DNA from: Klebsormidium nitens
Lineage: Eukaryota; Plantae; Klebsormidiophyceae
Direction of reading: 5' to 3'
Length of the DNA stretch: 64,000 nt
Assembly: GCA_000708835.1 (NCBI GenBank)
Contig: DF237311.1
Span: 28,417-92,416 of the forward strand
Both the position numbers and the translations under genes were made by a program. Positions 27,604 through 49,762 of the stretch are shown here, piece by piece. The notes under the pieces are model-generated. The model searched no databases. It worked only from the letters and a program-made list of their open reading frames with translations, and was not told the DNA's origin. Each line of letters opens with the position of its first letter. The stretch's first letter is position 1.

Positions 27604-27938
27604 CCTGCCCGCTCATGTACGATGAGTTTGCCCGGTCTAATTGCCCAGCCACTTGCCCGCACATGTGAATGCGTTCCCCGGCGTTGCTGCCCTCCCTTGA
27701 GCGCAAGCTGCCCGGTTGTACTGCCCGCTCTTGAGCGCGAGCTGCCCGTTTGTGCTGCCCGGTTTTCGTTCGCGCTGCACGGAGATACGGGTAACCCCTG
27801 CCCGCTCGTGCTGCCCGGCCACGATCACCGGTCAAACGGCCCGCTGCCCGGATTTCGGCCGATGACCGGGCAGGAGGCCGGGGAACGCGCTGCCCGGTGA
27901 GCTGCCCGTTAACGGGCAAACCGGTGTTCCTCCCTGTG
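27604..27938. repeat. Right subterminal TGCCC(G)G array plus right TIR
   Basis: More than 12 copies of (C/T)TGCCCG(G), ending in CGGGCAAACCGGTGTTCCTCCCTGTG. Confidence 0.85.
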
Positions 27939-28541
27939 GTGGAGACCGCGTTGAGCTCTTGCTATAAACTGGTGCCTGTCAAGCTTTCCCTTGGGATAAA
28001 TGTCGAGGATCTTAATTACGCAATGGTGCTCGCAGCTATTCCAATGGTGGGGATACCCGCCCTTTGCTTTGCTTACGTCGCGCTCGATGACCTTCTCTTC
28101 AAAGCCCCGCTGCCCGACCCTGGCAGCCTCAACGCCTTTCTCCAATCAAGCGGCCAGAACGTAACGCTCAGCCTCTGTACCATCAGGGACGCGTTTCAGG
28201 TCTATCTCGGTTTCTCAGACAGCTGCGACCAGGTTTTGGAGTCTCGCTATCCAGAAGCTGGCGCCTCCTTCGTGGAAATAAGGAAATACACCAAAAGACA
28301 GGCTTACAGCCATGGCTGGGAGCTAAGTGTTATCCTTTGTTTTGCTGGCATAATCTCATGCTACTCCTGGGTGCTTGCTTTCGGAGGCCTGCTTTACTAC
28401 TTAGGGGGAACCGTACGCCTGCTTTGCTGTCAGCGACCTCAGGCCAAAGTGCACGATGTCGAGATGCAGGACGCTGCACTTTTAGATGATGACGACGGTA
28501 GTGACGGACTTGGTAGTGGGTCAGATCTGGAAGATTCTTGA
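27939..28541 (+). pseudogene. Family-B (LPDP membrane protein) copy B1, C-terminal half only, directly abutting the transposon right end
   Basis: Encodes TM-APLPDPGSLNAFLQSSGQNVTLSLCTIRDAFQVYLGFSDSC-TM-CCQRPQAKVHDVEMQDAA, closest to B4. The reading frame begins at the TSD GTG. Confidence 0.8.
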
Positions 28542-29948
28542 CGCGGGTGCTTACGAAACCTGAACGCGGAACTGGGTAAGGCCTCGTAAGGAAGCATGGT
28601 GGGTGAGAGCCAAAGTGACAGGTAAAAGAATAAACAAAGGTGCAAGCAAGGAGTTACAAGTGAAGAAAAAGAGCTCCCAAGCTACCGGTTTTCAAGAGCG
28701 TTGCATAGAAAGAAAACATGAGATGCAGCGATAATTTGGGCTCGAGCGAAAAGACTATCGTGAGGATACTTTCTACTGAGGTACATTCAATTTGATTCTG
28801 GATGCATCTAGTCAACACGTTTAATCTGTAATACACCAACTAGTTTTCGAAGGCTATCACGAGTTTTGGTTTTTCTGGGACCCTTTCGCTGCCATCCAAT
28901 CGTCACCTAGCTCATTTCGTACTAAAAGTATATTCGTATTATGGTGCTTCATTATTCTTGCCCGCTAAGCAAGAGGTGTAATCGAAGGTAGTAAACCATA
29001 CATAGGCTCCTAAAGTAACCTTATGCGCTATTGTCCCTGACGTTCTATGTCCTGTACATTTTCTGCACTCAATACTTCGAAGTCTAAGTAGCATGCTTGA
29101 TGTGGGCGTCTCCACTTTTAAACGATCCAATTGGTTCCAAAAGTCGTTGTTGCTGCAGAGGTAAAACATTCTTCGTTTCATGCTCATGCGGTCTGGTGCA
29201 AAATCTTCTCAATCATGGGCAGCTGTATTTTTGCGCGCAATGAGTTGGTCAATTCAGGACTGTTTATGCCATCCCTGCCGAGTCGCGGGAGTTCGAACTC
29301 AATACCACGATGTCCGTTCTCTTGCATTTTGACGTTAATCCAGAAATGAAACCGATTCCAGGATGTAACGAAACCGACGCAAGCATCTCAAAGGCAGAAC
29401 CCACATTCAACGGACACTAAGCTTTCGAATTCGAATGGAACTCTTTAACTCTCCCGGCTGGCGCTCGCCAATGGTTTCACGTAAGAACTTAAATTGTGTA
29501 TGCCATACAGTATGGGCTTCTTGAAGGGTAGAGTCACCGCTTTCTTCCTGGACTGCAGCCTTCGCTAAACATGGGAACGACGTTGACCTGTTAACGTGGA
29601 TCTATATCCAGATATGGGGCCGGACGCGCTCGCGCCGCGGCGCGCGGCAGGGTAAGCAAAAGCCGCGCACGCCGGCGCATCGGGGGTCGCGAAGGGCCAC
29701 CGGGCGGACGTATCCGAGCGGACGCATAACCGTGACGGTCGGACGTCTTTCTGCGCGGCCGCCACGCGCAGGCCGCCCTCTTCGTCCTTCCAAAGCCTTT
29801 TCAATCCTAAGCTGGGCCAAACCATTCAGCGAACGCGAACGCGAACGCGCGACACGCGAACTTCAGCATCTAACGCGCTGCTTACTTGCCATAGATCAAA
29901 GAAGCGGCTGGACGTACATCCTAAGACTTTAGCTGCGGTGAGGAAAGG

Positions 29949-30958
29949 ATGACGGCCTTCAAGGCTTCTGGCGTGTCACTTTGGGCTGCCAGCATTTTGG
30001 CCATTCTCTTGGCGTTTGTTCAACAAAGCGAGGCTGCAAACTTTACCGTGGAAGTGACACTTGTTCACATGAAGGTCAACGGCACCACCAGCTTGCCTGA
30101 CCCAGGTCCCCTAAACGACTTTCTCCGGCAAAACGAGAGTTTGTTCAACCAATTATTTCCAGACCCTCAGCCCCCCTTGCAGCTGCAGAAATGCAACGCA
30201 ACCATATACCAGATCAACGCGTTTGAATTTTACACGCTCCAGCATCCGAGGGGGTGCGAGAGCGCACCGGGGCTCGCTAAGGATCCTGCGCAAGAGAGAA
30301 TGGTGCGCAAGTATGACAAGATTGTGGGAATCTGGGCAGTGGCCGTGTTGGCTTTGGTGATCCTCCTAGGCTGCGTGTGGCTGGTTAGCCCAAAGTTCGC
30401 TGCAGGCGTTTGCCAGTGCCTCGGAAAGATGCTAGTGCCCCCCCGTTATGGTAACCCTCAGTATAATGAAATCTGGGTGCTCGGTTTCTGCTTCCTCTTC
30501 TTATGCACCACGCTGCTTGGCTGGTTTGCAAGCTTCATCACGGGCATAGTTGTGTACGGCGCATTCATTGGCGTCAAGCACTTAGACCCAGCGAAGCTAC
30601 CTGACCCAGCTAGCCTTAACCAATTCTTTTTAAACAGAAACCAAACCGCCACCCTCTACCAGTGCACAATCCGAGACATGTTCGAGGTTTACGTTGGGTT
30701 TGCTGACAGCTGCAATCAGTTGCAGAGCTGCATTTACCCGGGAGTGGCACGCAAGGATGGGCCACCCCCTTTCGCTCACGGAGGCGGAGTAACCTTCGTA
30801 ATGATGATGGCATCAGTAATCACTTACGCATCCTTTCGGGGACTCTCTACTGTTGCTGCTGTTGCTGGCCGATTACTAAGAGCACCAGGAAGGTCTTTCG
30901 CGAGCGCAAGCAGGTGCGGAGTGTCGAGTTGCGGGCTCCAGATGGGTCCGCAGTGTAG
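29949..30958 (+). pseudogene. Family-B copy B2, full-length but frameshifted near the C-terminus (~30835-30841)
   Basis: Signal peptide, two LPDP repeats and TMs. The family-typical tail TLYCCCCCWPITKSTRKVFRERKQVRSVELRAPDGSAV* lies in a different frame ending at 30958, while the annotated ORF runs on to 31004 in an unrelated frame. Confidence 0.75.
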
Positions 30959-33290
30959 GCCGGATAGATCAGGAAAAGCGCTCTCTTTCGTCCTCTTACG
31001 TTAATAGCGTAAGTTTCAAGAACGGCTTGCAGTTAAGGCGTTACGTATTCACGTCAGAAGTAGATTTGCTTCAGACCGGTCATGACCTCTCGGAAACGAG
31101 TCGTAAGAACAGAGTGCAATGAAGTGAGCTTTGGCAGCATACAGGCATGATTACTTAACTTGAGTCTTGATTATTGAGGCGAGAGATCAACGCTAGAAAA
31201 GCGAGGTGAGTCATGAAAACAGAAGCGCTTCTGTGCGCTTTCTTTTAAAAGCCGTACGCTAAGCATTACCATCAGATTGGGTACATCATGTATACTTCTA
31301 GGTTCGAGTCTGTAGGAAGAAGTAGCAGTCCGGTTTGCGTGGCGGTCTTTGGGCCCTTGTCAAGCGTGTACAACATAAATGCCTGGCGCGTTTGGAGTTG
31401 CTATCTGTTTATGTAAGCTTTGATCATTCAAATTCATGCAATCAAGCAAAGGGCTTTGACACACTCATCCCTACCCAATGGCGATCAAAGTGTTTCGCTT
31501 ATCGTATTATGAGGTGAGGGGCTCTTGGGCTATGAGCTACTACTCCTTGAGTCGTGAAAAAGCTATGACTGCTCATGTGGTTTTGATTGCGCCACGTCTC
31601 ACAACAGCTTCACGTTCCGGCTGTTTCCTGATAAGCACTCATGAATGTAATGGTATTGAGAAAGGCTCTGAATAGCTTCGAGAACAGGATGATGCTTAGA
31701 ACAAGTCCACATGCTTCGTAGGGTGGTTGTAGACTGGCGCCACCACCCAAATGCAAACCTGCTACTAAGGCTCTTTACTTGGACTCGATACTTCTCTACA
31801 TCAAACTAAAAAGCGTCAAAGTCAAAGTCATTCAAACACCAGGAAGATAACAGAATTGCATCTACAGGTTTCGCACACGCCGATCATCATGAACGCATCA
31901 TGCAGCAGAATCAGAAACGTGTATGCTTATAACGCTTGGGTAAGGTTTCACCACAGCTTTATCGAACCCTGATTCTCCAGAGCCTTTTACTTTGCAGAAA
32001 CTTGATCCGTATTAGCAGATCCCGCTGTTATTGCCGTTTGCCAAGAACGGGTCCGAAAGGCAACAGCTTAATCCATTTGTCAAACGAATTGCCGTTCAAT
32101 GTTTCTGCCGCACGCCAATACAGTGAGAGCAGTGGTCCTCCAGTTCAGACTCCATTAGAGCTTCGAAACCTCCTCAAAGCTTGCGTAAATCTGTGGAAGT
32201 TTGAGTGGTAGCTTAAATGGGTCGCCCAGCTGCGCTTGTCGGAACTTTCTCATGAATTGTTCTAGTGGCCGGTTGTACCAATAGTCTGAAGAGAGCGGGG
32301 GAGAGCCACGCCATCACGTACGTCCTGAAACGCTGATAAGATCTGGGGCTCGATTTCAAAGATCTGACAAGACGGGCTTTCACAAAAACGCCGGGTTCTC
32401 AATTTCAGTATGAGGTTCCGAAAGTCACAGCAACAAAATATATCTTCAGACGTTCTGCTGTTCTGCTGACTGAGAAGTGGCCTGCAAGGGAATAGAGGGT
32501 TCCAACGCGCGAATGGTAAGGATCCTTGCAGAATGCTCAAGCCCAGCGCGCGCGCGAGCTCGGCGTGCTCGTGGCGGCCAGCGCATCGGCCCTTGGATGC
32601 GCGGCCGCAGGTCGCGCAGGGTTTAGGAGCCTTCAAATCCACCCCGCCGCGTGCTAGCACAGAAAGATAGAAAGTGCGACCGCGACGCCACAGAACGCGG
32701 CCACTCTCTGCTCAGCGGGGAGGCGCAAGGGAAGGCGGTCTTACTAATCATTAGTAAGAGCAAACCGGCAAACAGCCTTGGCGGCCGCTCGAGCAGGGCC
32801 CCGGGGGGGTAAACGGCTGGAAACGGCCACCCCCAGGAAAGTGAAGGCGGTGCAAAGCATGTTAAACTTCCATACTGCGACCGGACAGCAGAGAAGCAGC
32901 CCGGACGGCGGTGACGTCAGCCAGGAAGCGATGGTGCGTCAGCTGGAGGAAACGGAGGTGAGCCGTTGATCGGAAGAGCGTTAAGCACGATACCATATTT
33001 TCCCGATTCACTGGAAACAAAAGTGTGGCGGGGTTTGCCAGATGCACGTTTTGTTATTCTTGTCCAAAACAGACGAAATGTATAACGCGGCCTCTCTCAG
33101 GGGCGGAAACCGTTCCTGAGCGCGAACTTGTGTCCGATCAACAACCTGATTTCAAACCTGAGATATCCATTTTTGCCAGGAATCTCCACACAATGGAGAT
33201 TGTCCTTCATCAGAAACCCCTCGGAAGCGCCATGTAGGTAGGATGTCCCCAAAACTTTGCTCGAGCGAAACCCACCGAAACACATCACAG

Positions 33291-33462
33291 GATTCGAAGC
33301 GCCCGGCAAAGGCCTCGCACAAGCCGCGGTACACGTGGCGGTCCCCTCGGAACACCCGCGAGTACGACGACTCGAACGCGGACAGGGCCTCCACGGCGGC
33401 GCACGGGCTGCTTCAGAGTGCGGCGGGAGGTCGGCGTGGGGCGCTTCTCCTCCGTCTACCAG
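33291..33462 (+). pseudogene. Frameshifted fragment of a protein kinase N-lobe (CK2-alpha-like)
   Basis: Exon bounded by cAG/GTGCGC. Deleting one G at 33405-33407 gives REYDDSNADRASTAAHGCFRVRREVGVGRFSSVYQ, which aligns without gaps to the CK2-alpha start as I recall it ([35 protein letters not shown]). No later kinase subdomains were found. Confidence 0.45.
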
Positions 33463-33464
33463 GT

Positions 33465-33486
33465 GCGCGCGCGCGCGCGCGCGCGC
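33465..33486. repeat. (GC)11 alternating purine-pyrimidine tract (Z-DNA-prone)
   Basis: Directly visible, immediately after a GT donor. Confidence 0.85.
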
Positions 33487-34098
33487 GGCTGCTGTGATGC
33501 CTCTCTCAGTTTCATCTCTGTATGTGGATATCCAAAGGACGCTTTGTACACTGTCTGCCTTTTCAAGGTTGTCCGCCTGTTATTGTCCCTTCTTTAGTTC
33601 TTTTTTGTTTCTACTTTCGAGAGGGCGATACTCGGACGCTTACCATGAGGTGCGCGCGCACGCGGCGCTGCGGCGTTGAGTTCGCCAGACCTTAACGCGC
33701 GAACCTACTCTGCAGACCTTTCAAAAAAGCTGAGCAGTCTCAGTCTGAGAGACGCACCGTAGAGACGACGTGATACCAGCTGTCGCCCTGAATGGGCTGG
33801 TGTTGCGCACTACACCTGTCCATTTTTAGTCATTACACTTGTCGACAGGCGGGCGCGCGCACCGCGGCCCCCACGCGGATATGCGACGGAAGCGCGGTCG
33901 CTCTCCACAGCTCATCCGAGCCGGAAGGACGCGCCGTAATGACTTGTTATAACCGGCCTTCAACCGGAGCGTCACAAACTTGAACCTCTAGCATTGCAGC
34001 AAGCTCGCGAAGCACCGAAGCTGGACAAAAGCGGGTAGCGCCTGAACGTCCAAATCACAGGTCGAAAGCGCCACAAAGAAGACTCGTCCTGGGCAGCC

Positions 34099-35137
34099 AT
34101 GGCGACTTTCAGACACGGCAGCTGCTCCTTCCCAATGAAGATCTGCCTTCTCCTCCTCGCTGGTGCGTTTGTTTCCACCGGGGAGGCCGCTGACATCACT
34201 GTGGAGGTGGCGCTTGTTCACATAGAGGTGAACGGAACGACCAGCCTGCCGGACCCAGGTCTCCTCAACGACTTTCTTCGAGAGGACGCGAGTTTGTTCA
34301 ACCCTCTCATTCCAGACCACCCCCCATTCCAGCTGCAAAGGTGCGGCTCGCGTCTGTTTGAGACTCCTTTCGACTTCTACACGATCCAGCATCCGGGGGG
34401 ATGCGCGCGCGCGCCGGGGCTGTTGAGAAACCGGGAGAGAGACAGGGCGCTGCATACTTTTGACATGGTCGTATGGATCTGGGCGGCGGTTGTTCTGGGG
34501 CTGATTATCCTTGCCTGCGTAGGCTGCTGCGTGAACAAACCGTTTGCAACGGTTGCGGGGAATTACTTCGGCCAGCCGACAATCCCTGACCGCGAGTCAT
34601 TATGCTCCCCTGGGCCTTCAGTGGGCAATTGCACGGCCTTTTCCCTGCTCGTCGGCGTGGCTTTTGGCGCAGCTTTGTATGCGATAATCAGTCACCAGTA
34701 CCTGAACATGGTAAAGCTCCCCGACCCGGCGCCGATCAACCACGTACGTCTTCGCTTCCCACGGTTACAACACCACCCTTTACCAGTGCTCGATCAAGGA
34801 GAGATTCCAGGTCTACATCGGCTTCGCAGAGAGCTGCGACCAAGTCCAGAACTACACCTACCCGGAAGTGAAACCGATGTCGGAGTTCAACCCACCCCTA
34901 GTTCACGGACCGGGTTTCACCACGCTCATGTGCTTCGCCTCCGGAGTTACTTTTTCTTCGTGGACCCTGCTGGTCCTACTAGCGCTCTCCTTCTGCTGCT
35001 GTGGAGGGGCCAATTGCTCATTTCCCGAGGACCCAGATGAAGGCCTGGATGACATAGCGAGGTTCCGAAAGCTGCAAGGACTCAATCCGGACGGGAGCCC
35101 TAAATTCGAGGTTTACAAAGGAAATCTGGGCGTGTAA
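34099..35137 (+). pseudogene. Family-B copy B3, frameshifted by a 4-bp duplication (ACGT ACGT, 34742-34749)
   Basis: Removing 4 bp restores LPDPAPINHVFASHGYNTTLYQCSIKERFQVYIGFAESC...FCCCGG...*, colinear with intact copies. Confidence 0.85.
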
Positions 35138-36383
35138 CCATGATGGTTCTGGGCTGGCTATGAGCTGGTTTCAAAGTGCTCAAGTGCCCAGTAGCCAGGC
35201 TTGGGCCGTAACCAGCCTTGGAACAAGGTTAGATCCCAGTTACTGTCCATTGATCTGAGACTCGAGTCTGGAAATTCAGCAATATGGTTAGCAGCCAGAA
35301 CTTCTTGTGTAAGGCGCGTTTCGGCAGCATCAAGAACTGTTCAAAAGCGCCCGTATAGTCACATTGAGTTCGTAGAAAGGGCGTGAAAAGCTTCAGATGA
35401 GAGCCGCCGAAGACTTTGTGCGGCATACTATCACCTTGGATCGTTCGTACCTAGTTACGTTGAGAAGTAGATAACTTTCTTAAAGAGCTAGGTTAGGGTA
35501 GATTATACGGGACAGCAATACCCCAAGGTTAGCGTCACTCGTCCTGCTTATTTTGTCGCTTTGGATCTTACCAAATAGGTTCAGAGTAGAACGCATTCTT
35601 CAAGTTAGTCAAGATTGCTCCCGTCAAGCGGTCGTGATCTTCAGACTGAAGTCCCCTGTCGCAACCCCCTGTCGCTTCCATCAGTAGCTATTTAGCGCCT
35701 TTCCAATCGTTCCGTGCGCATCTCAAGCTGAACATAACTGGGCCGTCCAATCAACTTTTCCTTTTCTGCTTCTGAACCATCTCAGACCATCTAGTAAGTG
35801 CAGTTCGTTTGCCATACTGAGTGTCGTTTGATATCAGGTGATGATCATAGCCCCCCTTAATGGAGTCAGGACTCTCAGGCTCTTCTTAGCGATTGCATTT
35901 CTGGCCCTTCACTGATCTATCATACCGTCTTCCGCACTGTCCAAGTAACGTGTGACATTGAAAATTCAATTGATGCTAGATCAGCATAATGATAAGGAAC
36001 GGTCCTGAGAATTTCTAGCCCACCAAACATGTATATATAGCGCCCAGCCTGACTACACCAACATATCGACCTGACTCACCATATGTGTGATCCTGATAAC
36101 TCCTATCAAGCAATGTAAGCACTGGCATGCGCCCAGCTATTTGATCGAGTCACTCAAAACTGTCGCCACTTTCACGACCGTCATATCATAGACTTTGAGT
36201 CTTTCATTGTGATGCATGCCATGCAGGACGGTAAAGCTATGCAAACAACTGCATGGACTTTAATCGTGTAATCGCATCACTACGATCGTGCGGCGCGTGA
36301 TCGAAGGCTTAATTGCGAGTGCGACAAAACGTCCACACAATGATGGTGTTCAAGGCCAAGTTGCAGTCTACTTGCGTCCTTTA

Positions 36384-36719
36384 TCATGCGTGGCATCCCG
36401 CCAGAATCCCATCATATGTGTGCGGGCACTTGCCGACGATCAGCGCCAGCAGCCACTCGAGGTCCTCTTTGACAGCCGCCACTTCCGCTTCCGTTCCCAG
36501 GGCGTCCGTTCCGCTCACGCTCGACACCGTCACCGCCCCGCGGAACCTGTCGACGCGCATCACGTGGGCGATCCGCGTGGGGTTTGCGGAGCTGGGCAGG
36601 GCGGTGTTCAGGGCCGGTTCGGAGCTGTTTATATATTAAGTAGACGGTTATGTCGTTTGTGAAGAAATCAGGCGGCAAACAAACAGCCCCTGCAAGGAGA
36701 CGGCGGTGAAGGGAACCAC
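36384..36719 (-). pseudogene. Family-A copy A3, degenerate (multiple frameshifts)
   Basis: Minus-strand frames give VVPFTAVSLQGLFVCRLIS / FTNDITV / ...RIAHVMRVDRFRGAVTVSSVSGTDALGTEAEVAAVKEDLEWLLALIVGKCPHTYDGILAGCHA*. The 3' flank resembles that of A4. Confidence 0.8.
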
Positions 36720-37719
36720 GACGGTTTACTTCACAGTCACCGATGGAGGATAGCGATGATTCATAAAGTTGGAAGAAGCTACTACAACAAGTGTGCAGGT
36801 TTTAGTACCGCCTCCTTACACCGCCAGAAAGGAACGCAAAATTTTGGGCTTACATCTTGCGCCAGAAAGCATACGACCAGGAAAACGGAAGGTCGAAAAG
36901 ATTCACGTGGTTTGATTGGAAGGAACTGGCAAACTCAGAGGATTTTTCCTTTTGGTTAAGGTCCTAAGAAAAGAAAGTTAGTGAATGTGGTTTCTCGTCC
37001 AGGAACGCAATCTGAAGTGTACGTGAAACCAGATTCAATCCCCGACTTTGTTTTGAGTGGGTGCTCGAGCACGCGGGGTGAGCCGAGACATCGAGTCTCG
37101 CCACTCGTTTTATCGTTTGCATGATGAGTAGAGCGATCTATTTCTTTATGTGAGTGATATATTCCTTTATCCGAGTGATCCGGTTTACGTGACCGTCGCA
37201 AAATTAGGAGCATGATGACCGCATAAACAACGATGAACACCTTCTACTGTTGGAAAGGAGACAATCGAAAGCCGCTGTGGGGCTGTCACAACCATTTTCT
37301 GGGCTGAAACGCGCGACAAAAATGTTGGAAAGCAGGTCCTGAGAGACAGGTCTCGACAACAGGAACCGTGCAAAAGTAGAATACAAAGCCCCAGATCTGC
37401 TTTTCCAGGTTCGGAAAAGCGATGCGCAAACGAGGAAAAAGCGGGGCCCGTCTCATTCCACAGCTCGCGGAGACTTGGCCGAAGAGCTGGCCGCTTCGAG
37501 CACCCGTGCTGACGTCAGCGCTCGCTTCACTTACTTGAGCAGGGGTCTACACGCTCGAATCCCCTGTTCTGCCTTTGCTGCTCCGGCAAATGCAACCGGG
37601 GCCCGACCATCTGATTCTCCCGGTCTTGGTCGCGCTGGTGCCGCCGCCCACTGCATCTTCCAGGCCAGGTGTCTGACCCTCCGACCCCCCAAAGTCCGCA
37701 TCGCTAGCCCCGCCAACTC

Positions 37720-38210
37720 AAATCGAGGCCGGCCGTTTGGACCCCCGGTCAGCTTGCCTCCCCCGCCCTGACGCCATTTGCCCTGCCGCGCACCCCCTCA
37801 AGCGGAAATGTGGCCGTTAAGACCTCAGTGTTCGTCTCTCTGGGCGCTCCCCCTCCTACTGCAGGGGGCTGCCCGGTTTGGCTCCCCGGTCGGCTGCCCC
37901 CTGCCGCGCTGACGCCGTTGCTTCGCAGCACCCCCCCAGGGGAGTTTCTGGCCGTTCGATCGAGTCCGCCTCCCTCGGCGCTCCCCCGGGCTGCCTTTTT
38001 GGGTCCCCGGTCGGCCTTCCCCCGACCCCGCCCCACGCTGCCGCTCACTGCTCGTCCCCGGTCAAGGGTCTGGCCGTTCGAGCCCCCGGTTCAGCTTCCT
38101 CCGGCCGCTTCCACGATGGCCCGCCCGGCCGGCCTGTCTCAGTCCTGCTCGCACCCCCGCTTGCCTCACCCCCCCAATCAAAAAATCTGGCAGTTCGATC
38201 CCCCGAGTCC
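37720..38210. repeat. C-rich degenerate tandem repeats (~120-bp period) built on TGGCCGTTCGA-CCCCCGG
   Basis: Motif at 37731, 37811, 37949, 38071 and 38188. The overlapping Pro-rich ORFs look like low-complexity artefacts. Confidence 0.5.
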
Positions 38211-40213
38211 ACTTTCTCCGGGGGCTCCAACTCCAACCGGGGGCTGGCTATCCCCCATGCCAGGCCGGCCTGTCCCCTGTCCCGCCCGCACTCCCGCTCA
38301 CCGCAAGGTCCCCAACGAGAAGTGGTTCACTTTTTCTCCCTGCTGTGCTCAGGGATCCGTCAGCCGAAACCCCCCGGTCCGAGGGTAGCACTCTTCCCGA
38401 TCGAACTGGTCATGGCTCGAGATCTGCGAGGCCTGTGTTCCGAAATGGAAGGTCAGACGTTATTGAATGCGGGGCGGCTTCTCGGAAGCATGGCAAGTAC
38501 GGCATGGTAAAGAAGAACCCGGCATTTTCGGCCGCCTCAAATATCCACCAAGCGTGCTCGTTCGGATTGCAAGTGGCAACGAAAAAGAGAGGCAGAAAAG
38601 CGACGATCGTCGAGGAGCGCAGAACAGCTCTGAAGAAAAAGGGAGCGGGACTCAAGAGAATCTGACCTTGCAGGAAGACAATGTGGGAAGGGAATTGTGC
38701 TTGCCCCTCAAGCAAATGTGGGCGGCCAATCGGGAACGAGGGGGCGGTTCTCAAAGCTCTCATTTCGGCTCGCTTTGCATCTGCAAAGAATGCAAGGACG
38801 AAAAGGGGTCAGGGGGCTCAGGCTAGCGCAAGCCCTGGTCCCGGGGGCAGTCCTCGCAGCACGCAAGGGTGCAAAGCGCTCTGCCATCTACTCGATAGGC
38901 TGCTTTGCAAGGTGACGTCAACGTCCTGCAAAAAGCCCTCATCTTTGAAATTTGGACCAACGCGCTGAGCAAAGCACGAAGGTGGGGGGGACAAGGAAAG
39001 CCCAGAATGTCCCTGAGGAGACAAAAGGTCTATGCCCCCGCCACTGCCTTTGCGGTAGTACGTGGGAAAAGAGTAGACTTCATTTGTATGCAGGAGCTTG
39101 AGCATTCCAGCAAAGGAACTTGCAGTCTGCAAAAAATGAGGTCATCAACATGGCAGTTAAGCGAATGTGGATTGAGTGACGTGCTCGAGACAACGCGCCC
39201 ATCTGATCCAGGACGCCACACTCGTATGTTTCTGGATACTGTTGCGCAGTACTGATCAAGAGGAGGTGTATCAACTGATGTAAGCACAAGTCGGTCTTAC
39301 ACCTGGTAACCGTGATTGATCATAGAGCGCAGCTTCTGATACCCCCCACCTGTCTAGCCTCACCTTAATAAAGATTGAAGCATCCCTTGCTTGCAAGGTT
39401 CTGAAGGTTGACATGAAAAGACCATCACCGTAGAAACCCACCTGCACTACAATTGTGCGCTTCTGCCAAGCTCATGACTTTAGATTCCTCCAAGCTTTGG
39501 AAAAAAGCTTGGAGGACAAAGGCTGATCGCGATTGAATTACGTGGCGCAGCTACTGCAACATGTTCAAAGTCATCACATGTAAATTGTGTAGGACCTGCA
39601 AGCAGACCTCACAGACCTGCGCAGACCAGGCTCGTCTTTTGATATCTCTGGACATTGAACAGCGAAGCCTGGCCGGGATGCGGAGAAGTTGTCCAGGCGC
39701 TACTAGTGGTGCTGATGTGCTGATCAACTCCGAAGGCCCAATGGCAAGGGTGATCCCCCGGCGACGATTCCCAAGTCTTTTTTAAGATTAGATTTTAGGG
39801 TTTTTTTTTACCCTAACCTGAAGTTTTAATCTTCGAGTTTGGGAGTCTTCGAAAACGACACCATCCGACTGCAGGTAGAGCCAGGTATTCGAACCCGTGC
39901 ATTTTCCTGTTCCTTTCCCGTCTTGCAACGGCGACTCGTGGCACGGAGTGGTTCTCCGGGCGAGAGATTTTATGGTATTGTGTCAAGCTTAGGGACTTCA
40001 TAACCTGTACAGGCTGTCACCACAGTTTGAATCTACCTATTAAACGCAAAAGTTGCTGTGCATGGACCGCATCTGACAGGTGTCAGGATGATCCCTGTAG
40101 ATGTTGTCATTATCATTAAAATGAGAGGGCTCCCGGCTTGGGCTCAGCTTCCTTCATTTTTGCAGAGGGCCAGGGCCCAGGGGGCAGGGGCAAGAAAGCG
40201 CCGCTTAGACGCG

Positions 40214-41227
40214 ATGGGGGCCCGCAGTCTCTTGGGCGCCTGGCATGTGTCAGCCTTCTCAATTGTCCTAATTGCTGCGGCGCTGTTTGTCCAGGGAGGG
40301 GAGTCGCTGACGGTTGAGACCACCTACCGCGTTCACGTGAATGGCAGCACCAGCTTGCCGGATCCAAGTCCTCTTAACGCCTTTCTGCTGAGTCACAGCA
40401 CATCGCTTAACCCGCTGCTGCCTGACCACCCTCCAGTCCAGCTGCAGCTCTGCAACTCCAGGGTTTATTCCCAACCCTTTGATTTCTACACGCTGCAGCA
40501 CCCGGGGGGTTGTGCCAGCGCACCAGGGTGGATAACGAGCAAGTCAGTAGGTGCGAGGGTGCTTGAAGCAATCTGGCTGGCATGGGGTGCGGTCCTTGTA
40601 GCTGGGCTGGTTCTCACTTGGGTGATTCCCTCCAGGATGTCTGCTCTTAAGGGATGGGCAGTCCGCTGTTGCTATAGCTTGGTGCCCGCCAGTCCGGAGC
40701 GCATAAAGATTCCAGCAGACATCATTGCGGCCTCTCCATGCCTGAGGGTAACCGCGGTGTTTCCATTGTTTATCCTGATAGCCCTTCTCAACTTTTCATA
40801 CGCTGCGATGGACAAACTCCTCCCAGCCCCGCTGCCCGATCCTGCCAGCCTGAACGCCTTTCTCCATTCCAGCGGCCAAAACATAACGCTCAGCCTCTGC
40901 ACCATCAGGAGAGACTTTCAAGTCTACATAGGGTTCTCAGACAGCTGCAACCAGCTGTCAGCCTCCCTCTATCCAGATCTTAGCACCACATGCGACGAAA
41001 CAACAATCGACACCAGAGTCCAAGACACTTTTAGTCATGGCTTGGCAGTGGCCATTTTGACGTTCTTTGCCGGCTTTTTCACATGCCTCTCCTGGCTGGT
41101 TATCGCCATAGGGGCACTTGCATACTTTGCAGCGGTCGTATACTTTTGTTGCTGTGGCCGACGTCCGGGCAAAGTGCACGATGTCGAGATGCAGGACGCC
41201 GCCAGCACATCAGGTCTGGTCGTCTGA
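40214..41227 (+). CDS. Family-B copy B4, intact 337-aa intronless membrane glycoprotein (signal peptide, LPDP ectodomain 1, TM, loop, TM, LPDP ectodomain 2, hydrophobic segment, Cys cluster)
   Basis: Uninterrupted ORF from MGARSLLG. It contains VNGSTSLPDPSPLNAFL...LQLC...FDFYTLQHPGGC and PLPDPASLNAFL...NITLSLC...FQVYIGFSDSC and ends FCCCGRRPGKVHDVEMQD. Confidence 0.88.
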   Translation: MGARSLLGAWHVSAFSIVLIAAALFVQGGESLTVETTYRVHVNGSTSLPDPSPLNAFLLSHSTSLNPLLPDHPPVQLQLCNSRVYSQPFDFYTLQHPGGCASAPGWITSKSVGARVLEAIWLAWGAVLVAGLVLTWVIPSRMSALKGWAVRCCYSLVPASPERIKIPADIIAASPCLRVTAVFPLFILIALLNFSYAAMDKLLPAPLPDPASLNAFLHSSGQNITLSLCTIRRDFQVYIGFSDSCNQLSASLYPDLSTTCDETTIDTRVQDTFSHGLAVAILTFFAGFFTCLSWLVIAIGALAYFAAVVYFCCCGRRPGKVHDVEMQDAASTSGLVV

Positions 41228-42271
41228 TGAAGAGACACTTGTGCGGGAAGTCTTGAGGAGGAGTATGCATGTGCTTTTTAGGCCTTCTTGAGGTGGAACC
41301 ATAAGGCTTGTATAAAGACAGCACGATAGTTCACTAGCAAAGGCTAAGAGCCACAATTTGAATGACATAGGCTTGTATTTATAAATAAGTCCCAGGGTTG
41401 TTGTCAAACTTTCAAAGCACAGAGTAATCATAACTGGTGTAAAGTACTGAGGTACGTACACGGACAGAACGTCGGACATGTTTGGAGAAAGTTCAGGGCT
41501 GTACGTTTTGCAGACACACTGACAAGTACGAGTCTGAGCAAGGGCCGGAATGCTTTTTCTTCTTCTACTAACTTTTGATCCACCTAGTATGTACAAAATT
41601 TTCGTAAACTCTGTTCGTCATACTGAGTCAGTGTCGTTTACCATTTCGTACTATCTAGCTAGAGCCCCTGGTGGGATCCGGACTCCCTTTTCGATGATCA
41701 TTTGCAGTTCTGGCCCTCTGTACTGATCCATCTGTCACAGCCGCCCGTCTTTCGCAACATGAGAACGTGTGAAACAATAAAACTAACTCTGATAGATTGC
41801 ACTATGATGATCGAGGTCCCGAGCTGAGCACTTAGTCCATAGAACTTTCTCACCAAGCATGTGCATGTCTAGTGCCCAGCCTGAGCTGATTAGTAAATAC
41901 TCAACGTACGCGGTAATCACCGACCTACTCAGTACCTGTGCTCTTGATGATTCATGGCAGGCACATGCGGCACGGGCGAGCAGGTTGATCAAATCAAATT
42001 GAGAGTGTCGCCATATGCACAAGTTAAGTACGATCATGTATAGACGTTGAGCCGCACCGTTCATTTACATGTATGCTGCACAATAATCAATTTAACTCTG
42101 CAAAGTCCTGCATGGACGGATATGATCTCGTGACTCGTTCATTGCTGCGAGCACGCGGCGCATGACTGAATGCTCGAATGCAAGTGCGACAAAACTTGAA
42201 ACCACACACTAATGATGGCCGCGCTACTCTCAGGTGTTCAAGGCCTCGTGGCGGTCTAGCTCCATCTCTTA

Positions 42272-43738
42272 TCATGCGTGGCATCCCGCCAGAATCCCAT
42301 CATATGTGTGCGGGCACCGGCCGCAGATCAGCGCGAGCAGCCATTCAAGGTCCTCTTTGACCGCCGCCACTTCCGGTTGCGTTCCCAAAGCGTCCGTTCC
42401 GCTCGAGCTCCACACCGTTGCGGCCCCGCGGAACTCGCCGATGCGCACCACGTGTCCAGTCCCCACGTGAGCAATCTCCGTATACCAGAGCGAGATTGTG
42501 GGGTTTGGGGGGGTGATGAACCTGGGCAAATCGGCCAGGGTTCGGTTTGGGGCAAGTTTGAATCCGACGGTCATGTCGTGTGTGAAGACGGAGATCAGAC
42601 GGTAGAGAAACAGCCCCGACGAGATGGCCGCGCACAAGGGGACCATCTCGCCTCCGACGTTCTCAGGGCACGCCTGAGGAAAAGGAGACAGATTGAGTCT
42701 GTAAGTGATTCAACAGGAGCTAGGCATAATGATCGGAGGACTGGAAAGTCGACAAAGTCGATTTTCAGCTGAAGCATCCGCTCGTTGGCTTCCATTATCC
42801 ACACGGAAGCGAAAGACTGCTTCACTTGGTATGCGGAAGTGACGGAGAGCGAGTGGCCGCATGATCCATAGGGTTCGTTCTTCGATAATGTGCTGAAACT
42901 CAGACCGCGTTTAGGATATCTTCTTAGAGAGCAAGAAGCACTTCCAAAGCCCTTCAACAGAAACCGTTGGCTGCCGGCGTGCTCAAAAGCGAAGAAGAGG
43001 AAGAACGCTATCATCACAAAATCATTACGAAGGTACTAATGCAGATGGTTGCAACATTACCTGATTGGTTGATACACGCTCGGAGAAGTCCTGAAGCTTC
43101 TCCTCAAGTTCGCAAATGCAGACTCTTCTGGACGGAGGATCAACGGTGACCGTGAAGCTCTCCTGATGAGTCCGTTCCGATCTGCAGAAGACAATCAGGT
43201 GGATGCATTCTAGCTTCGAGATGCTTCCGAGCTTACTTTACACTCCGAATCCTGCTTCGCCTTTCCGCGGGCAAGCTGGCTCGCCCGCCTTTGATATACT
43301 TTGATACACAGCTATTGTCTTCTGCCGCTCAGGCTCGGGCATCGCTAGGCTTAGACTTGCGCTTGGTGACGTGGCTCCACTAAACAAACTGAAGCAGGAG
43401 CGTCACATACACCTGGAAAAGCCGGAAGTGTCATAGGCAAGAAGGACGCTTCATCGGGTATGGCTTGCTTCGGAGAGAATTGAAAGCATACCAAAATCAT
43501 TTGTTCCAGCTTTGGCGAACGAGTAGAACAGCAAACAGGCGCCAGTTGGCCCTTACGTGTCAGGTTCTGGCACCGTCGTCCAGCGCTCGCGCACCCGGAC
43601 TATGTTGTCGCAGTCTTCTTGCGAAGCACCCTGGGGCCCTGCGTAAACCGGGTCCACCACATACCGCTCAAACTGCACGTGCAGTTTGAGCGGTATGAGT
43701 CTGCTGAGGACCTGGTGCACCAGGTCCTCAGCAGACAT
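42272..43738 (-). CDS. Family-A copy A4; exons 43738(or upstream)-43557 and 42698-42272 (202 aa from M43738), N-terminus F-box-like
   Basis: Phase-2 splice EPD ac|GTAAG...ttacAG|a ctc gives an open 609-nt CDS. EDLVHQVLSRL resembles the start of an F-box motif. The last exon is near-identical to A1. Confidence 0.7.
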
Positions 43739-44166
43739 CCTGGACCAACGGCCGACTAGACAGGCGAGAACGAGCCCAACCAGAATGACGGTAGCCCATG
43801 CTAGCCAGATTGATTCAAGCGTCTTAGCAGCTGCTGGTTTGCTCCTTATCAGCCCCGGCGCGCTGGCACAACCCCCAGGGTGCTGCAGCGTGTAGAAGTC
43901 AAAGGATTGGGAGTAAATGCTAGAGTCGCAAAGCTGCAGCTGGACTGGAGGGTGGTTAGGTAGCAGCGGGCCGGGTTAACCGAACCACTCTGCTTACGCA
44001 GGAAGGCGTTCAGGAGACTTGGATCCGGCAAGGTGGTGCTGCCATTGACGTGAACAGTGACCTCAAGCGTTAGCGACTCCCCTTCCTGAACAAACACCGC
44101 AGCGATAAAGACAAGCTTGAAAAGGGCTGACAACTTCCAGGAGCCTAAGAGACTGCGGGGCGCCAT
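43710..44166 (-). pseudogene. Family-B copy B5, N-terminal half only (signal peptide, ectodomain 1, TM1), with a 5-bp insertion at 43968-43975, fused to the A4 exon
   Basis: MAPRSLLGSW...VNGSTTLPDPSLLNAFL, then after the frameshift LLPNHPPVQLQLC...LQHPGGCASAPG...IWLAWATVILVGLVLACLVGRWSRMSA. Homology to B4 stops abruptly after ccaggatgtctgct. Confidence 0.82.
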
Positions 44167-46285
44167 ATTCGTGCCTCAGCGGCACTTGTCCTGCCCCGAG
44201 TCTAGCCTATGCGACAGAAGCGCCCAAATCGGTTGCGTCCGGCCAGCTTGCAGTTCAGTCTGAATCACGATTGGTCAGTGCTGACACAGAGGCCCCAAAG
44301 AGGATCGAAAGCCGCGTCTCCGCGCGGCCGCACTTCAGCGGGTTTCGAGATTCTAAATTCCCGGCCTGAGCCATGATACTGAGCGGCCGCCGTAAATGCG
44401 CAGCCGCGGCCCGGCCTGCCGCGACACCGCCGCACGCAGCGGTCGATGCGCTAAGTAGGCGGCGCCGTCGTTCGAATTGAGAGATTCAAAGCCCAAGGGA
44501 ACGGATACAAACGTACGTACGATGGTACGACGGTACGTCCTGGCGGGCCTCCATAGACAGGGTTACCACTTGCGAGCTCCGAGCTGCATTCGAGTGCTTC
44601 CGAGTACTGTTCGTGTGTCCCCGGGATTCTTGGTTGGACGAGGCCAAAATGTGTGGTCATTTGCAGGACGCACAAGAGTTACTCGACTGCTTACGGTCAA
44701 GAATGCAATGATCAGTCACAAAACCTCGCCAACTGAGACGGGCGCGAAACAAGCAAAGCAATGACCGCCAGACCGGGGCCAGATCTCAGCACTCAAGGAC
44801 CGAAAGATTCTTTTTGACCGCCATCCCTTTGCCCTGCTAGTGCCTGTAAATTACAAGAGCTTGACGGAGATGCAGGAGATGCGTTGCTTTACTGCTTTAC
44901 TGGTTTACTGCATGCTTGTGACCCGTTTTAGATTCACAGCACCAGTCCGGTCTCGCTTCAGGAACAAGCCAATCATGTCACAAGTTCCACCGGCGTATTA
45001 TGATGCGAGCCGCATAATGGTTCGCGGCAAGCTCGCAGCGCCGTTCGTTGCATAAGATTATACTTCAGTAGATCTGCGGGGAAAACAGGAACGCTACAAG
45101 ATTTGCAAATGCTCAAGCAAAACGGCTTTTGAATCAATGCTTGAAAGTAGTCTCAGGCTGTGTCGACCTGGTGCGTCAATATTGAGCCGTCGGATGGACG
45201 TTCGTCTGGTTCCGCATTGAAGATATGCGCGAACAGGTCGCAGTGACTTGGAATTGAAGGGGTGGAATCAAGGCCCACGCTAGTCGGATCTGCCCATAGT
45301 CGACTCAGGAAACGCACCTATGATTGCTATTCGGCTGAAAACATGGATGGGCAAATATTAAGTACTCGGAAACTCATTCTCAGATGTGCAATATACTCGG
45401 CTGGCTACCTCCGGAAACGCATACATCTGCTCGCATGTCGCACTTCCCTATTCATTTGCATCAACGACACAGAGTCCGGAGTACTTATGATTTCCTATTA
45501 CCGATTGGTCTGTAGAAAGCGAGATGGTGCAGGGGATACGAGGATGAATAGCAAGTCAACAGCCCACCAGCTTTTAAGCAGGCGCTTTTTGCCAAGCAGT
45601 CGGAAGTAGGACTTTTTGCAGCGCTTCGCTACCTCAGTTCTGATTACGATTTTGAGGACCCGACTTCACTTGATTATCATTCCGTCTCAATTTTGGGTCC
45701 TAACCAGAAGCTCGCACATAAACCTAATGGGCAGCACGGTTCTAAGAACGCCCTACAAAAACACTTTAGTTTTGAAAGGGAAGTTATACGGCTTTGCCCA
45801 CAGGACGTCCATAACATGCGAAGGGCGTCAGATCAAACGAAAGAAGGAAATTGCACCGCTTCTCTGCCTGTCAACTTTGCTGCTATTTGGAGAATCCTTC
45901 AAAAGCTGTCCAGGAATCCACCTAATAAGCAAAGTCTGATCTGCCACGAAGTATTGGATTCGGATTCAAAGGTGCCCGAGCTATCAAGTATGATAAGCAA
46001 CGTTAACGAAACAACTATAAGCCTTTCTCAAGGGTGTTCAGCAGGGCTCTTCCTATCGTTTGACCAAAGCGGGCGGCCATATTGAGAAAAACTCACGGCT
46101 ACCAAGAACAGAAGCTATGAAAGAATCTGAAGAAACTGTGAGTGTCACTTTCTTCCTTGAGGTATTGTACGCTATGCACCCTTGAGGGAATCTATGCTAA
46201 TTACCCTTGAAAGTAACTAGGTACGCGACTACTCTCAAATACCGTTTCTGTTCTAGCACTTCCAAGGTCTTTTGCGGACCTGACG

Positions 46286-47287
46286 CTACACCGCTGATCC
46301 AGCAGGGGCCTGCATCTCGATGCTATACACCTTCTGCCGGAGGAAACAGCAGCGGTACAGGAGTCCAGCAGAATGACAAACCAGCCCTGCGATGATACAG
46401 GCCCAGGAGGTGAAACTCATCCAAGCAGCCGCAAACAGCAGAGCGCTCATCCCAGAGCTATGCCTGAAGGCGTGGTCATTGTCCTTGGTTAAGCTGATCC
46501 CAGGGTAGAGAAAGTCCCCAACTTGGTTGCAGCTATCGGAGAACCCTATGTAGACCTGAAACGCGCCTCTGACGGTGCAAAGGTGAAGCGTTAAGTTCTG
46601 ACCACTGGAGAGGAGGAAGGGGTTCAGGGTTGCTGGATCAGGGAGTGCTGCGGAGTTGAGGGGGATTTGTCCAAGGCCAATTGGAGGTGGGGCCAGGTAC
46701 CAGATGGGGGTTAGGTATGCAATCTCCACAATCAATACCGTAACAGTCACGGTATAATTCACAAGGAGATTCTTTGGGGCACGCCCGCCAAAGTAAGCTT
46801 CAAGTTGCTTCGGGAATCCGAAGAATATATTGGCTGCCCACCATCCCCAAGGGGACTTGAAGCAGGTAGTACCTATGAGCGAAACTAGGTACAGCGCAAA
46901 AGCTAAGGGAGCCCAGATCAGCAAGACTATCTCCAATCTCTGGACAGCTTTGCCTGTCTTCTTAACCAGCTCCGGTGCCTTCTTACAACCTCCGGGGTGC
47001 TGCAGCGTGTAATATTGGAATGAGTTGGCAATTGTGCTGGCGTTACAGAGCTGAAGCTGGACTGGGGGCCTGTGTGGGAGAAGGGGATTGGTCATACTGC
47101 TGTTGCTTTGCAGAAAGGCGTTTACCATGGAAGGATCGGGCAGGCTGGTGCTGCCGTTGACCTGAAGGGTGACCTCAAGCTTCATCGCCTCCCCTTTCCC
47201 AATGGATGCAACAGCAACAAGTAGGCAGATCATGACTGCCATCTCAAAGCACGCGGATCTGAAGAGCTTGCAGAAGATTGGTTCCAT
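46286..47287 (-). CDS. Family-B copy B6, intact 333-aa membrane glycoprotein
   Basis: Full ORF with signal peptide, both LPDP repeats, conserved Cys pairs, N-glycosylation sequons and the tail RCCFLRQKVYSIEMQAPAGSAV*. Confidence 0.88.
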   Translation of the reverse strand: MEPIFCKLFRSACFEMAVMICLLVAVASIGKGEAMKLEVTLQVNGSTSLPDPSMVNAFLQSNSSMTNPLLPHRPPVQLQLCNASTIANSFQYYTLQHPGGCKKAPELVKKTGKAVQRLEIVLLIWAPLAFALYLVSLIGTTCFKSPWGWWAANIFFGFPKQLEAYFGGRAPKNLLVNYTVTVTVLIVEIAYLTPIWYLAPPPIGLGQIPLNSAALPDPATLNPFLLSSGQNLTLHLCTVRGAFQVYIGFSDSCNQVGDFLYPGISLTKDNDHAFRHSSGMSALLFAAAWMSFTSWACIIAGLVCHSAGLLYRCCFLRQKVYSIEMQAPAGSAV

Positions 47288-48789
47288 TGCGTCACTCTAA
47301 GTCTTTGGGGTCCTACAACAACTACGTCCAGGAGAGGAGCGCCTAGCAGATTATGTCCGCAACTTATCAGGGGCGCCTTTGGCCGGCCTAACACTGCAGA
47401 GTACAGAAAGCTGGGCGGCTCGAGGTGTCAAAGACGCGGCCGCCGGGCGGGATTCAACCGTTCAAAGGTTTAAGAGCGCCGCTCGGCCGGGCCGCGCCGG
47501 CTGGCCGGTTCAATGAATCTGACCCGCGGCCGCGGTGCTTCCGGCCTACTATGTCTTTCCGGCCGCCGGAAACCGGACCGGAATAGACTTGCTTATCCAA
47601 ATGTGCACCAGACAGGAAGCCTTAGCTGTCAGACACGTCAATTCGCATCTTCAAGTTCTCATGATCAACAAACTGCGGCTGATCAAAAGTTTGAAGAACA
47701 TGTACCGTTTGGCACACCGTTAATTGGCGTCTAGGTGAGCTTTCATTCAACTGATTAGGCTCGAACGCTGAGGCGATGTATCACGTCCGTGACGTCGGCT
47801 GTCTTCTTAGGTCTGCTGTAGAAATATAAGTGCCGTTGTCTGAAGCACGCTGTTGGTGACCTCAGAGGCGCGGCAGCAGATGAAAGAGAAGATAGGTAGT
47901 ACCATCGAAGCGGTCTGCGTGTCTCCATATACATGAAGCTGCAGGACAAAGAGGCGTCCGGAAAAACTCATTATGCAGAGGTTTCGATACTCTCAAACGC
48001 TGGTATAAGACATCAATTCTCGTGATACTGCATGAATTTACTACCCATGGATTTGAAGTTCAATATTCTCATGCTCATCATCCTCTCGGATCATCCGGCT
48101 TCGTGCGGATGATGTCTTTGACCATTGGTCTTGCTTGCATGAAGACAGCTCTGCATATCTGACTTGAAAACGGCCTATCGGCCAGGTACATGCAGTAGAT
48201 GTGTAAAAGTATTTCGAGATCATATGGCCGGCCCTGGAAAGACAACGCTGGGAAAGAAGGCGCCTATATAGTTAACGGGCGATGATATCCAGGTCGACAA
48301 AGAGCGTTCTGTAACAGAGCGCTCAGAGCGCTCTTAGTGCATACAGTTAGTGGTCGACTTCCCTCCAAAGAAACCTGGATCAAAAGCGTTCACCATCTCC
48401 GACACGATAACTTTCAACTGTTTAACGGATGATCACTTCTTCAAGTTCCTGAACGTATAGTCATCACTTGAGACCAAGAATCCAATCAATTTCGAATCGT
48501 CTATCTTAGAAGCTCGATCACGACGTCTGAGGGTGCCCTCCTTTTCGGCATCCTATGAAGTGCTCGTTTCCCATGTCAGCACCGAACAGCGAAAAGCACT
48601 GAACCAATTTTCCTTTTGCAAAACGGGGCACCTCCGGCCGCTGCCTACATAACTTTCACGTCTAAAAGGCGGAAGGTTTACGTCCTCAAGAGAACCGCCA
48701 GGTCAGAAACTACTTCGTTTGCGGCCGACGTTACGTCTTCCCCTCTCTCAAACTAGTGTTGAATAGCTTCGAATCGTTGATTCTTGACG

Positions 48790-49762
48790 TCAGACACCCG
48801 TCCCTGAAGGAGCAGGCATTTCGATCCTAACAGCTTTTCTCCGCTCAAGGCAGCAGTTCCAAATTCCGACACAGTGACAGAACAACCCAAAGATGACGTA
48901 AAGCCAGAACAAGCACGTGATGACACCACACACGCACAGCAGAGCGACCATACCCCCAGTATGGCGGTAGACTCTCTTCTTGTCGATGGTCAGGCTAACC
49001 CCGGGGTACAGGTAGTCTTCAATTTGGCCGCAGCTGCCTGAGAAGCCTATGTAGACCTGAAACGCGCTCCTAACCATGCACCTACACAGCGTTACGTTGT
49101 GGCCGCTGGAGTGGAGAAACTGGGTCAGGCTTGCTGGGTCAGGCAACGGGGCGGCGTGAAGAGTCGTCAGACCAAGATACGCCAGGTAGAGAGCCGCCAC
49201 GCCGAATCCGGATAAAACCGCCACGAGGACGCCTGCCGGGATGCAGTCGCGCCGGATCCACTTGGGAAGACTTCCTCCAAACTCCATGCGCAGTTCTTTT
49301 GGAAAGCACCGCAGGGCGTTGCCAGCGCACTCCCTGAAGGATGCACTGAAGTGACGGGCGATAAAGCAGAGTTTAAAGATTGCCAGAGTCAGGGCAACCC
49401 AAAGCAGCCAGATTGCTTCAAGAGTGCGGATTGCTGTATCTGGGTTCCTTAACAAGCCCGGCGCGCTCTCGCATCCCCCCGGATGCTGAAGCGTGCAGAA
49501 GCTGAAGGGATTGGAGTAGATGCTCGCGTTACAGATCTGCAGCTGCACTGGGGGCCTGCGTGGGAGAAGCGGATTGAACAAACCAGTGTGGTTGTTCTTT
49601 AGAAATGAGTTTAGCAGACTTGGGTCAGGGAGACTGGTGCTGCCATTGACATGGAGGTAGACTTCAAGCGTGTAACGACTCCCCTCTTTGAACAAACACG
49701 AAGACAAAGATGACTAGGCCAAGCAAATAGCCTGCAGACCTTGAGAGCTTGAGGACAGCCAT
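48790..49762 (-). pseudogene. Family-B copy B7, +1 frameshift just after the signal peptide (~49672)
   Basis: ATG 49762 reads MAVLKLSRSAGYLLGLVIFVFVFVQRGESL then shifts. tta C acg ctt gaa should read LTLEV as in B5. The remaining ~295 codons are open and colinear. Confidence 0.8.

Follow-up and report, generated by a model that had tools for sequence, protein, structure and literature searches.

The genome of the alga Klebsormidium nitens carries, within the 64,000-nucleotide (nt) stretch analysed here (the window: contig DF237311.1, positions 28,417 to 92,416), a cluster of related open reading frames (ORFs) for predicted membrane glycoproteins, termed here the LPDP family. The cluster lies at window positions 27,939 to 49,762, and it raises the question of which of its copies are working genes, to what they are related, and what their products may do. 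A preliminary interpretation made from the DNA letters (the sequence-only reading) had described seven copies of an undescribed, fast-diverging surface family, and had suggested a role in recognition or as channel accessories. In the present study two of the copies, B4 and B6, were found to be expressed and selectively maintained genes, the conserved part of which is a pair of Cys-bonded modules bearing N-glycosylation sequons. No link to any described family or fold was detectable in the searches reported below, and the proteins are new at the family level, any function being putative.

The cluster and its transcribed copies

With B4 as tblastn query over the whole stretch, seven homologous segments were recovered within 27.9-49.8 kb (E-values of 1e-39 to 1e-63), and this homology is real and far above chance. 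The coordinates and the copy count of the sequence-only reading were both correct by this measure, but 'seven genes' is too many, as the segments comprise two intact copies, three frameshifted copies and two halves. The state of each copy was judged by three-frame reading and alignment to intact relatives, and only B4 and B6 have intact ORFs. The copies, with their transmembrane segments (TMs) numbered in order, are listed below together with the segments matched by the B4 query.

B1: 27897..28541, plus strand; C-terminal half (loop end, TM2, ectodomain 2, TM3, Cys, VEMQ tail, acidic extension); matched segment 27948-28469, plus strand
B2: 29949..30958, plus strand; full-length copy with a 13-nt deletion after 30831, inside TM3; matched segment 29982-30836, plus strand
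B3: 34099..35137, plus strand; frame shifted by +4 within ectodomain 2, where ACGT is duplicated (4 nt, near 34745-34752); matched segment 34147-35005, plus strand
B4: 40214..41227, plus strand; intact, 337 amino acids (aa), inside the public model KFL_003620105; matched segment 40208-41224, plus strand
B5: 43731..44166, minus strand; N-terminal half spanning signal peptide, ectodomain 1 and TM1, in which, compared with B4, 5 nt are inserted at 43971; matched segment 43730-44166, minus strand
B6: 46286..47287, minus strand; intact, 333 aa, orthologue P0007; matched segment 46292-47239, minus strand
B7: 48790..49762, minus strand; full length, but with a single additional base near 49673-49676, where the signal peptide gives way to ectodomain 1; matched segment 48799-49689, minus strand

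The B4 ORF is 100% identical to the hypothetical protein KFL_003620105 of K. nitens, and consists of a signal peptide, two ectodomains, three TMs, a CCC cluster and the tail KVHDVEMQ...LVV. None of the lesions in the other copies is a homopolymer slip. The tail of B2 (RKQVRSVEL...GSAV) runs on in another frame to a stop at 30958, and its orthologues P0010 and P0015 are intact; the tail of B3 has diverged and is without the VEM motif; and the extra base in B7 leaves its signal peptide, which starts with the ATG at 49762, in a different frame from the remainder. For B1 no N-terminal half is present upstream, homology to B4 starting at about 27953, while in B5 the homology stops at about 43731, from where the ORF enters F-box-like sequence. 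The cluster as a whole represents a compact subfamily of 320-360 aa with a VEMQ...SAV tail. Rfam and tRNA scans of the whole window gave no match.

Contigs from four runs, belonging to four studies, were aligned to 40700-46699. In all four a B4 contig of 1354-1556 nt was found, aligned without mismatch from 40700 to 41514-41712; the remainder of each is of a length that fits collinearity with the genome back to about 40141-40170, and it cross-matches B5 in the register expected of unspliced coding sequence. In run X1 the alignment of the B4 contig stops at 41514, the contig finishing with 22 nt that resemble an Illumina adapter; this end is an artefact of the library and does not mark where a transcript stops. 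B6 is represented by a 1560-nt contig in run X1 only, aligned to 45857-46699 with no mismatches, and the other 717 nt of this contig, if collinear, would reach about 47416 and so span B6 and its untranslated regions (UTRs). The contigs of a run total 28-44 Mb, coverage of 40700-46699 is patchy, and the stretches 42673-43059 and 43182-43556 are skipped at two contig joints whose ends read CT..AC, or GT-AG on the minus strand; because of the patchy coverage and of these joints, which lie in a neighbouring minus-strand gene, the runs have the character of RNA. The sampled-word shares (0.34 for X1 and about 0.16 for the other runs) are wholly explained by B4, B6 and a small neighbouring contig, so that B7 is apparently not represented, and B5 has no contig of its own in the four runs. 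The genes with transcripts are thus B4 and B6, the two intact ones, and the possibility that no copy is expressed can be set aside. The claim that the genes are single-exon stands for the coding sequences of B4 and B6, over the aligned part of which the RNA-like contigs show no skip, although a 5'-UTR intron is possible for B4, with a good acceptor at about 40163. Single ORFs are also found in the contigs of relatives (L003-L006).

Protein architecture, relatives and predicted fold

Two alignments were used, one of 13 full-length members (A1) and one of 48 sequences covering the wider superfamily. From the N-terminus, the members of A1 consist of a signal peptide, the first ectodomain (some 86 aa), TM1, a loop of some 37 aa, TM2, the second ectodomain (some 74 aa), TM3, a cluster of Cys and a tail of some 25 aa. 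The sequence-only reading had credited each gene of the cluster with this plan; in the window it is complete, and in one exon, only in B4 and B6, the five other copies being halved or frameshifted. In intact members, however, the claimed architecture and topology hold by hydropathy, sequons, Cys and charge. The N-terminal hydrophobic stretch reads as a cleavable signal peptide, with short h-regions followed by a conserved small-x-A/S site (e.g., QSEA|A, GEA|A and GES|L). Sequons lie almost entirely in the ectodomains, at 3.5 per protein compared with 0.3 in loop plus tail, and one precedes the first Cys of module 2 in 12 of the 13 members. The density of Lys plus Arg is 0.13-0.14 in loop and tail but 0.05 in the ectodomains, an enrichment that matches the positive-inside rule, and so a cytosolic position for loop and tail would fit. 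The motif K-V-[HY]-x-[VI]-E-[ML]-Q lies in the tail, the last residue of which is usually Val (-SAV, -LVV, -TGV); this pattern of motif and terminal residue recurs in several distant members.

The residues invariant in A1 are L48, P49, D50, P51, N55, C80 and C100 in module 1, and L207, P208, C229 and C245 in module 2. That the two ectodomains arose by internal duplication, as had been proposed, was borne out by profile comparison: in the 48-sequence alignment hhalign relates the two modules with a probability of 94% (E 1.3e-7) over 47 columns, which take in the helix at LPDP, the two strands and the two Cys, and with 13 sequences the probability was 87%. One relative, the 363-aa P0012 from a Logan contig, has an extra partial LP-E-x...L-K-A-F-L helix motif at residues ~20-60, before module 1, which hints at a third, degenerate repeat.

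A model built by AlphaFold2 (AF2) with 13 sequences had a predicted local distance difference test score (pLDDT) of 57, too poor for use. With 48 sequences pLDDT rose to 79 and the predicted template-modelling score was 0.66, and both ectodomain cores reached 89-98. Each module is predicted to form one helix after LPDP and a beta-hairpin bearing the first Cys, the second Cys following the hairpin. Searches with the whole model gave no match in the PDB by Foldseek (best E 1.0), template-modelling scores of at most 0.22 in the ESM Atlas, and no match in BFVD or pdb_via.

The sequence searches gave a similar result. Pfam returned sub-threshold noise only, both for the 48 members at E<=0.01 and for 4 of the copies at E<=1; a profile search of PDB sequences returned TM noise only (a designed coiled coil being the best row, at E 0.011); ESM Atlas searches by features, with the whole protein and with ectodomain 1, gave no usable match; and the literature searched neither mentions the locus tags nor describes the family. 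The view that the family was undescribed was upheld at each of these levels, and no confident match to a known family was found in Pfam, the PDB or the ESM Atlas or by Foldseek.

A word search found 13-14 related proteins, its repetition with the wide alignment bringing no further taxa, and an exhaustive profile search of 1.84 billion protein representatives found 71. Thirty of the 71 were looked up, and all 10 that are named come from K. nitens, being KFL_003620100 (of the window cluster), KFL_000390070/110, KFL_000580110, KFL_001920120, KFL_001970050/130 and KFL_004230020; with KFL_003620105 and KFL_003620120 counted, at least 10 public K. nitens models belong to the family. The remaining looked-up matches are from Logan, Joint Genome Institute (JGI) or European Nucleotide Archive (ENA) assemblies, and the three Logan matches that were traced are all from run SRR23617307. 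A complete Trinity transcript ORF in EukProt, P0003, belongs to the B4 clade and is 64% identical to B4. The family has thus been found so far only in what appear to be Klebsormidium-like algae. The other superfamily loci of K. nitens resemble the window cluster in having two LP[DE]P...C...C modules, the same order of membrane segments, single ORFs and partial clustering, but they differ in having much longer, acidic cytosolic loops and only 18-28% identity to B4.

Descent, selection and a probable rearrangement

In the maximum-likelihood tree B6 pairs with P0007, B7 with P0006 and B4 with P0002, while B2 groups with P0015 and P0010, and both B1 and B5 are nested within the clade of B4. A contig of a related alga (L003, from run SRR23617307) is collinear with the right flank of the cluster at 51.1-53.8 kb, and beyond this flank the orthologues of B7, B6, B2 (in duplicate) and B3 follow on a single strand. 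Together, this synteny and the orthologue pairs of the tree indicate that the paralogues are older than the split from the related alga. The two B2-type copies of L003 (11828-12910 and 14341-15372) are intact and in tandem, compared with the one broken copy in K. nitens.

Ratios of nonsynonymous to synonymous substitution (dN/dS, or omega) were estimated by the Nei-Gojobori method for three orthologue pairs, and were as follows.

Whole gene: 0.25-0.39
Ectodomain cores: 0.09-0.17
TM1-loop-TM2: 0.35-0.58
Stalk-TM3-tail: 0.29-0.62

Among the aligned members, column identity is 0.51-0.57 in the ectodomain cores and 0.18-0.32 in the anchors, as expected from the earlier claim of conserved cores and a divergent loop and TMs. 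Across the 48-sequence superfamily all invariant and nearly invariant columns lie in the ectodomains, and the membrane segments have none. This combination of constrained ectodomains with loose anchors and loop argues against both a hypervariable recognition family and a pore.

The two halves, B1 and B5, probably derive from one B4-like gene that was split by an inversion of about 15.8 kb (27.95-43.73 kb), a reading that can be held with moderate confidence. B5 matches B4 residues ~3-141 on the minus strand and B1 matches residues ~147-329 on the plus strand, so that they are complementary, and they stand at the two ends of the block B2-B3-B4, which is inverted relative to L003. Such geometry is predicted by a single inversion with a breakpoint inside a B4-like gene, which would also explain why the B5 stump abuts F-box-like sequence. 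On the other side, B1 is much more diverged than B5, and the related contigs L004-L006 have no flank in common with the window. In one of these, from a JGI metagenome, a B4-clade gene (L005:10001-11053) was called as two ORFs 30 nt apart, P0022 for the N-terminal half and P0005 for the C-terminal half, and its break falls in the same cytosolic loop region that separates B5 and B1 in K. nitens.

Three public gene models look wrong, being chimeric or over-extended, and for this reason the family would be hidden from orthology pipelines. KFL_003620100 (769 aa, 29949-38507) joins the frameshifted B2 ORF, small pieces, the N-terminus of B3 and an unrelated Pro-rich ORF (37866-38507); KFL_003620105 (38681-41224) places a 5' exon (38681-38911) before the signal peptide of B4; and KFL_003620120 (46286-49287) begins within B7 and goes on with the C-terminal half of B6. 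The 93-residue N-terminal extension annotated in KFL_003620105 was rejected, since both the orthologue P0002 and the transcript ORF P0003 start at the signal peptide, and the RNA-like B4 contigs, should they follow the genome collinearly, would end some 45-75 nt upstream of ATG 40214. This ATG is the coding start of B4, as it is in P0002 and P0003. About 200 nt past the B4 stop (41228-41434) align at ~73% to B4-clade genes in metagenome contigs (L005:11048-11259 and L006:5843-6056), which suggests that the 3' UTR may be conserved.

Several neighbouring features deserve mention. A spliced gene of low depth lies at 42370-43673 on the minus strand, its two GT-AG introns being the stretches skipped by the contig joints; it overlaps the F-box-like region and is not connected by any contig with the B5 stump (43731-44166). 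A 222-nt direct repeat (36345-36566 and 42233-42454, 85% identity) represents a second copy of non-LPDP sequence interleaved with the LPDP genes. On another K. nitens scaffold, P0047 (KFL_001970130) is modelled with an F-box-like N-terminus running into an LPEP module without an intervening signal peptide, and is either an instance of a recurrent F-box/LPDP-family neighbourhood or another fused gene model.

What the proteins may do

The features of the intact genes, judged from sequence, are most consistent with surface or endomembrane proteins that would bind, or act as a scaffold for, a conserved partner in the lumen or outside the cell, a reading that is somewhat more likely than not. The ancestral unit would have been a signal peptide, ectodomain, TM and acylated tail, the duplication and fusion of which would have turned the second signal peptide into TM2. 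The intact product would then be a membrane glycoprotein of the secretory pathway with a basic cytosolic loop and a short cytosolic tail, its two modules facing the lumen or the outside and forming a pseudo-dimeric, N-glycosylated and disulfide-stabilised ectodomain. This ectodomain may bind a conserved partner, either a glycan of the wall or matrix or another protein, while the membrane segments would be mere anchors, the Cys clusters would be acylated, and the motif-bearing tail with its terminal Val could handle sorting or adaptor binding. Acidic and C-terminal valine signals for export from the endoplasmic reticulum (ER), and S/T-x-V ligands of PDZ domains, are known elsewhere and offer a lead.

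Several considerations weigh against this proposal. Its functional part is inferential throughout; signal-peptide cleavage and topology rest on simple sequence rules (hydropathy, charge, sequons); and the fold negatives hold at the level of the whole model, so that a known small ectodomain fold could be missed. The runs are labelled 'RNA? (a guess)', and their contigs give neither strand nor level; the frameshifts were read from a single assembly; and the Klebsormidiophyceae origin of the Logan, JGI and ENA matches is an assumption.

An alternative that is unlikely, though reasonable, is that the proteins reside in the ER, Golgi or another endomembrane rather than at the plasma membrane, for example as cargo receptors or as accessories of wall-polymer synthesis. 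The short, conserved tail, with its acidic [VI]-E-[ML] motif and frequent terminal Val, resembles known trafficking signals, and the conserved luminal domains and expression across studies would fit a housekeeping role, but neither KKxx-type nor KDEL-type retrieval motifs are present in the tails.

More doubtful is the suggestion of the sequence-only reading that a fast-diverging surface family implies diversifying recognition, whether of self and non-self, mating partners or pathogens. A tandem multigene family with birth and death, in which five of the seven copies have decayed, whose products are by inference surface-exposed and glycosylated, and one intact member of which (B6) was seen in only one of the four studies, is what such a role might produce. 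The divergence, however, is in the wrong place, as purifying selection is strongest on the ectodomain cores, which are also the most conserved parts among paralogues, and it is the anchors, loop and stalk that have diverged. The paralogues are moreover old, with one-to-one orthologues, and the presence of B4 contigs in four separate studies speaks against a mating-specific role for that gene.

A role as channel subunit, or as the channel accessory suggested previously, is very improbable. The layout, with its two Cys in each outer loop, is like that of large-pore or tetraspan channels, or of a duplicated two-TM ancestor, but the TM columns are the least conserved of all. Like the LPDP family, pannexins, innexins and connexins have four hydrophobic segments, and Cys are conserved in each of their two outer loops (in pannexins and innexins, a pair in each). 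They differ in that the LPDP helices are poorly conserved, the LPDP outer loops are duplicates of one module, and no Pfam or fold match connects them; rows for connexin (Cx43) appeared in the PDB profile search at E 1.5-1.8, over a TM stretch only. Finally, an origin as a mobile-element or viral (envelope-like) gene would account for the absence of introns, the number of copies and their decay, for the genes are intronless next to a gene with two introns within 1.3 kb and many copies are broken. It is nevertheless hardly credible and largely refuted, because around the copies only their own coding sequences are repeated, terminal repeats that would bound an element being absent, no relatives were found in 2.9 million viral contigs searched with A1 or among BFVD folds, and syntenic orthologues are shared between species under purifying selection.

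With a binding or scaffold protein preferred, other known membrane proteins offer comparisons of layout. The claudin/PMP22/EMP proteins are alike in layout only, being small and multi-pass with two outer segments, a Cys pair in the outer loop, juxtamembrane Cys and a C-terminal Val or other hydrophobic residue. They are unlike the LPDP family in that the latter has no match to PF00822 or PF13903 and the W-GLW-C-C motif is absent from A1; the LPDP outer segments are mutually homologous, much larger (~85 and 74 aa) and rich in sequons, and apparent cleavage of the first hydrophobic segment reduces the TMs to three. No claudin chain, with its four-helix bundle and outer beta-sheet, was among the top matches of the whole model in the Foldseek PDB or VIA wide searches, where weak matches do not exclude a fold. 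Tetraspanins share palmitoylation-like juxtamembrane Cys, disulfide-bonded outer domains and the scaffold-type role proposed here, but the LPDP family is without a PF00335 match, has no CCG in either ectodomain, and has an outer domain of helix plus hairpin instead of an all-helical one.

What can be claimed at present is a new protein family, perhaps with a new fold, and not yet a new mechanism. Klebsormidium serves as a reference alga for green-plant multicellularity and for the move onto land, and a transcribed family of several clusters with constrained outer domains is a candidate for surface biology peculiar to this lineage, for instance in holding filaments together, in attaching to or sensing the wall, or in the trafficking of membranes. 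A bolder and rather improbable extension is that the LPDP module is a new extracellular fold and the family an invention of the Klebsormidiophyceae for cell-cell or cell-wall attachment or for wall sensing. If this were true, one of the earliest filamentous, land-dwelling streptophytes would have found an independent way, using neither claudins nor cadherins, to hold a simple multicellular body together or to sense its wall during drying.

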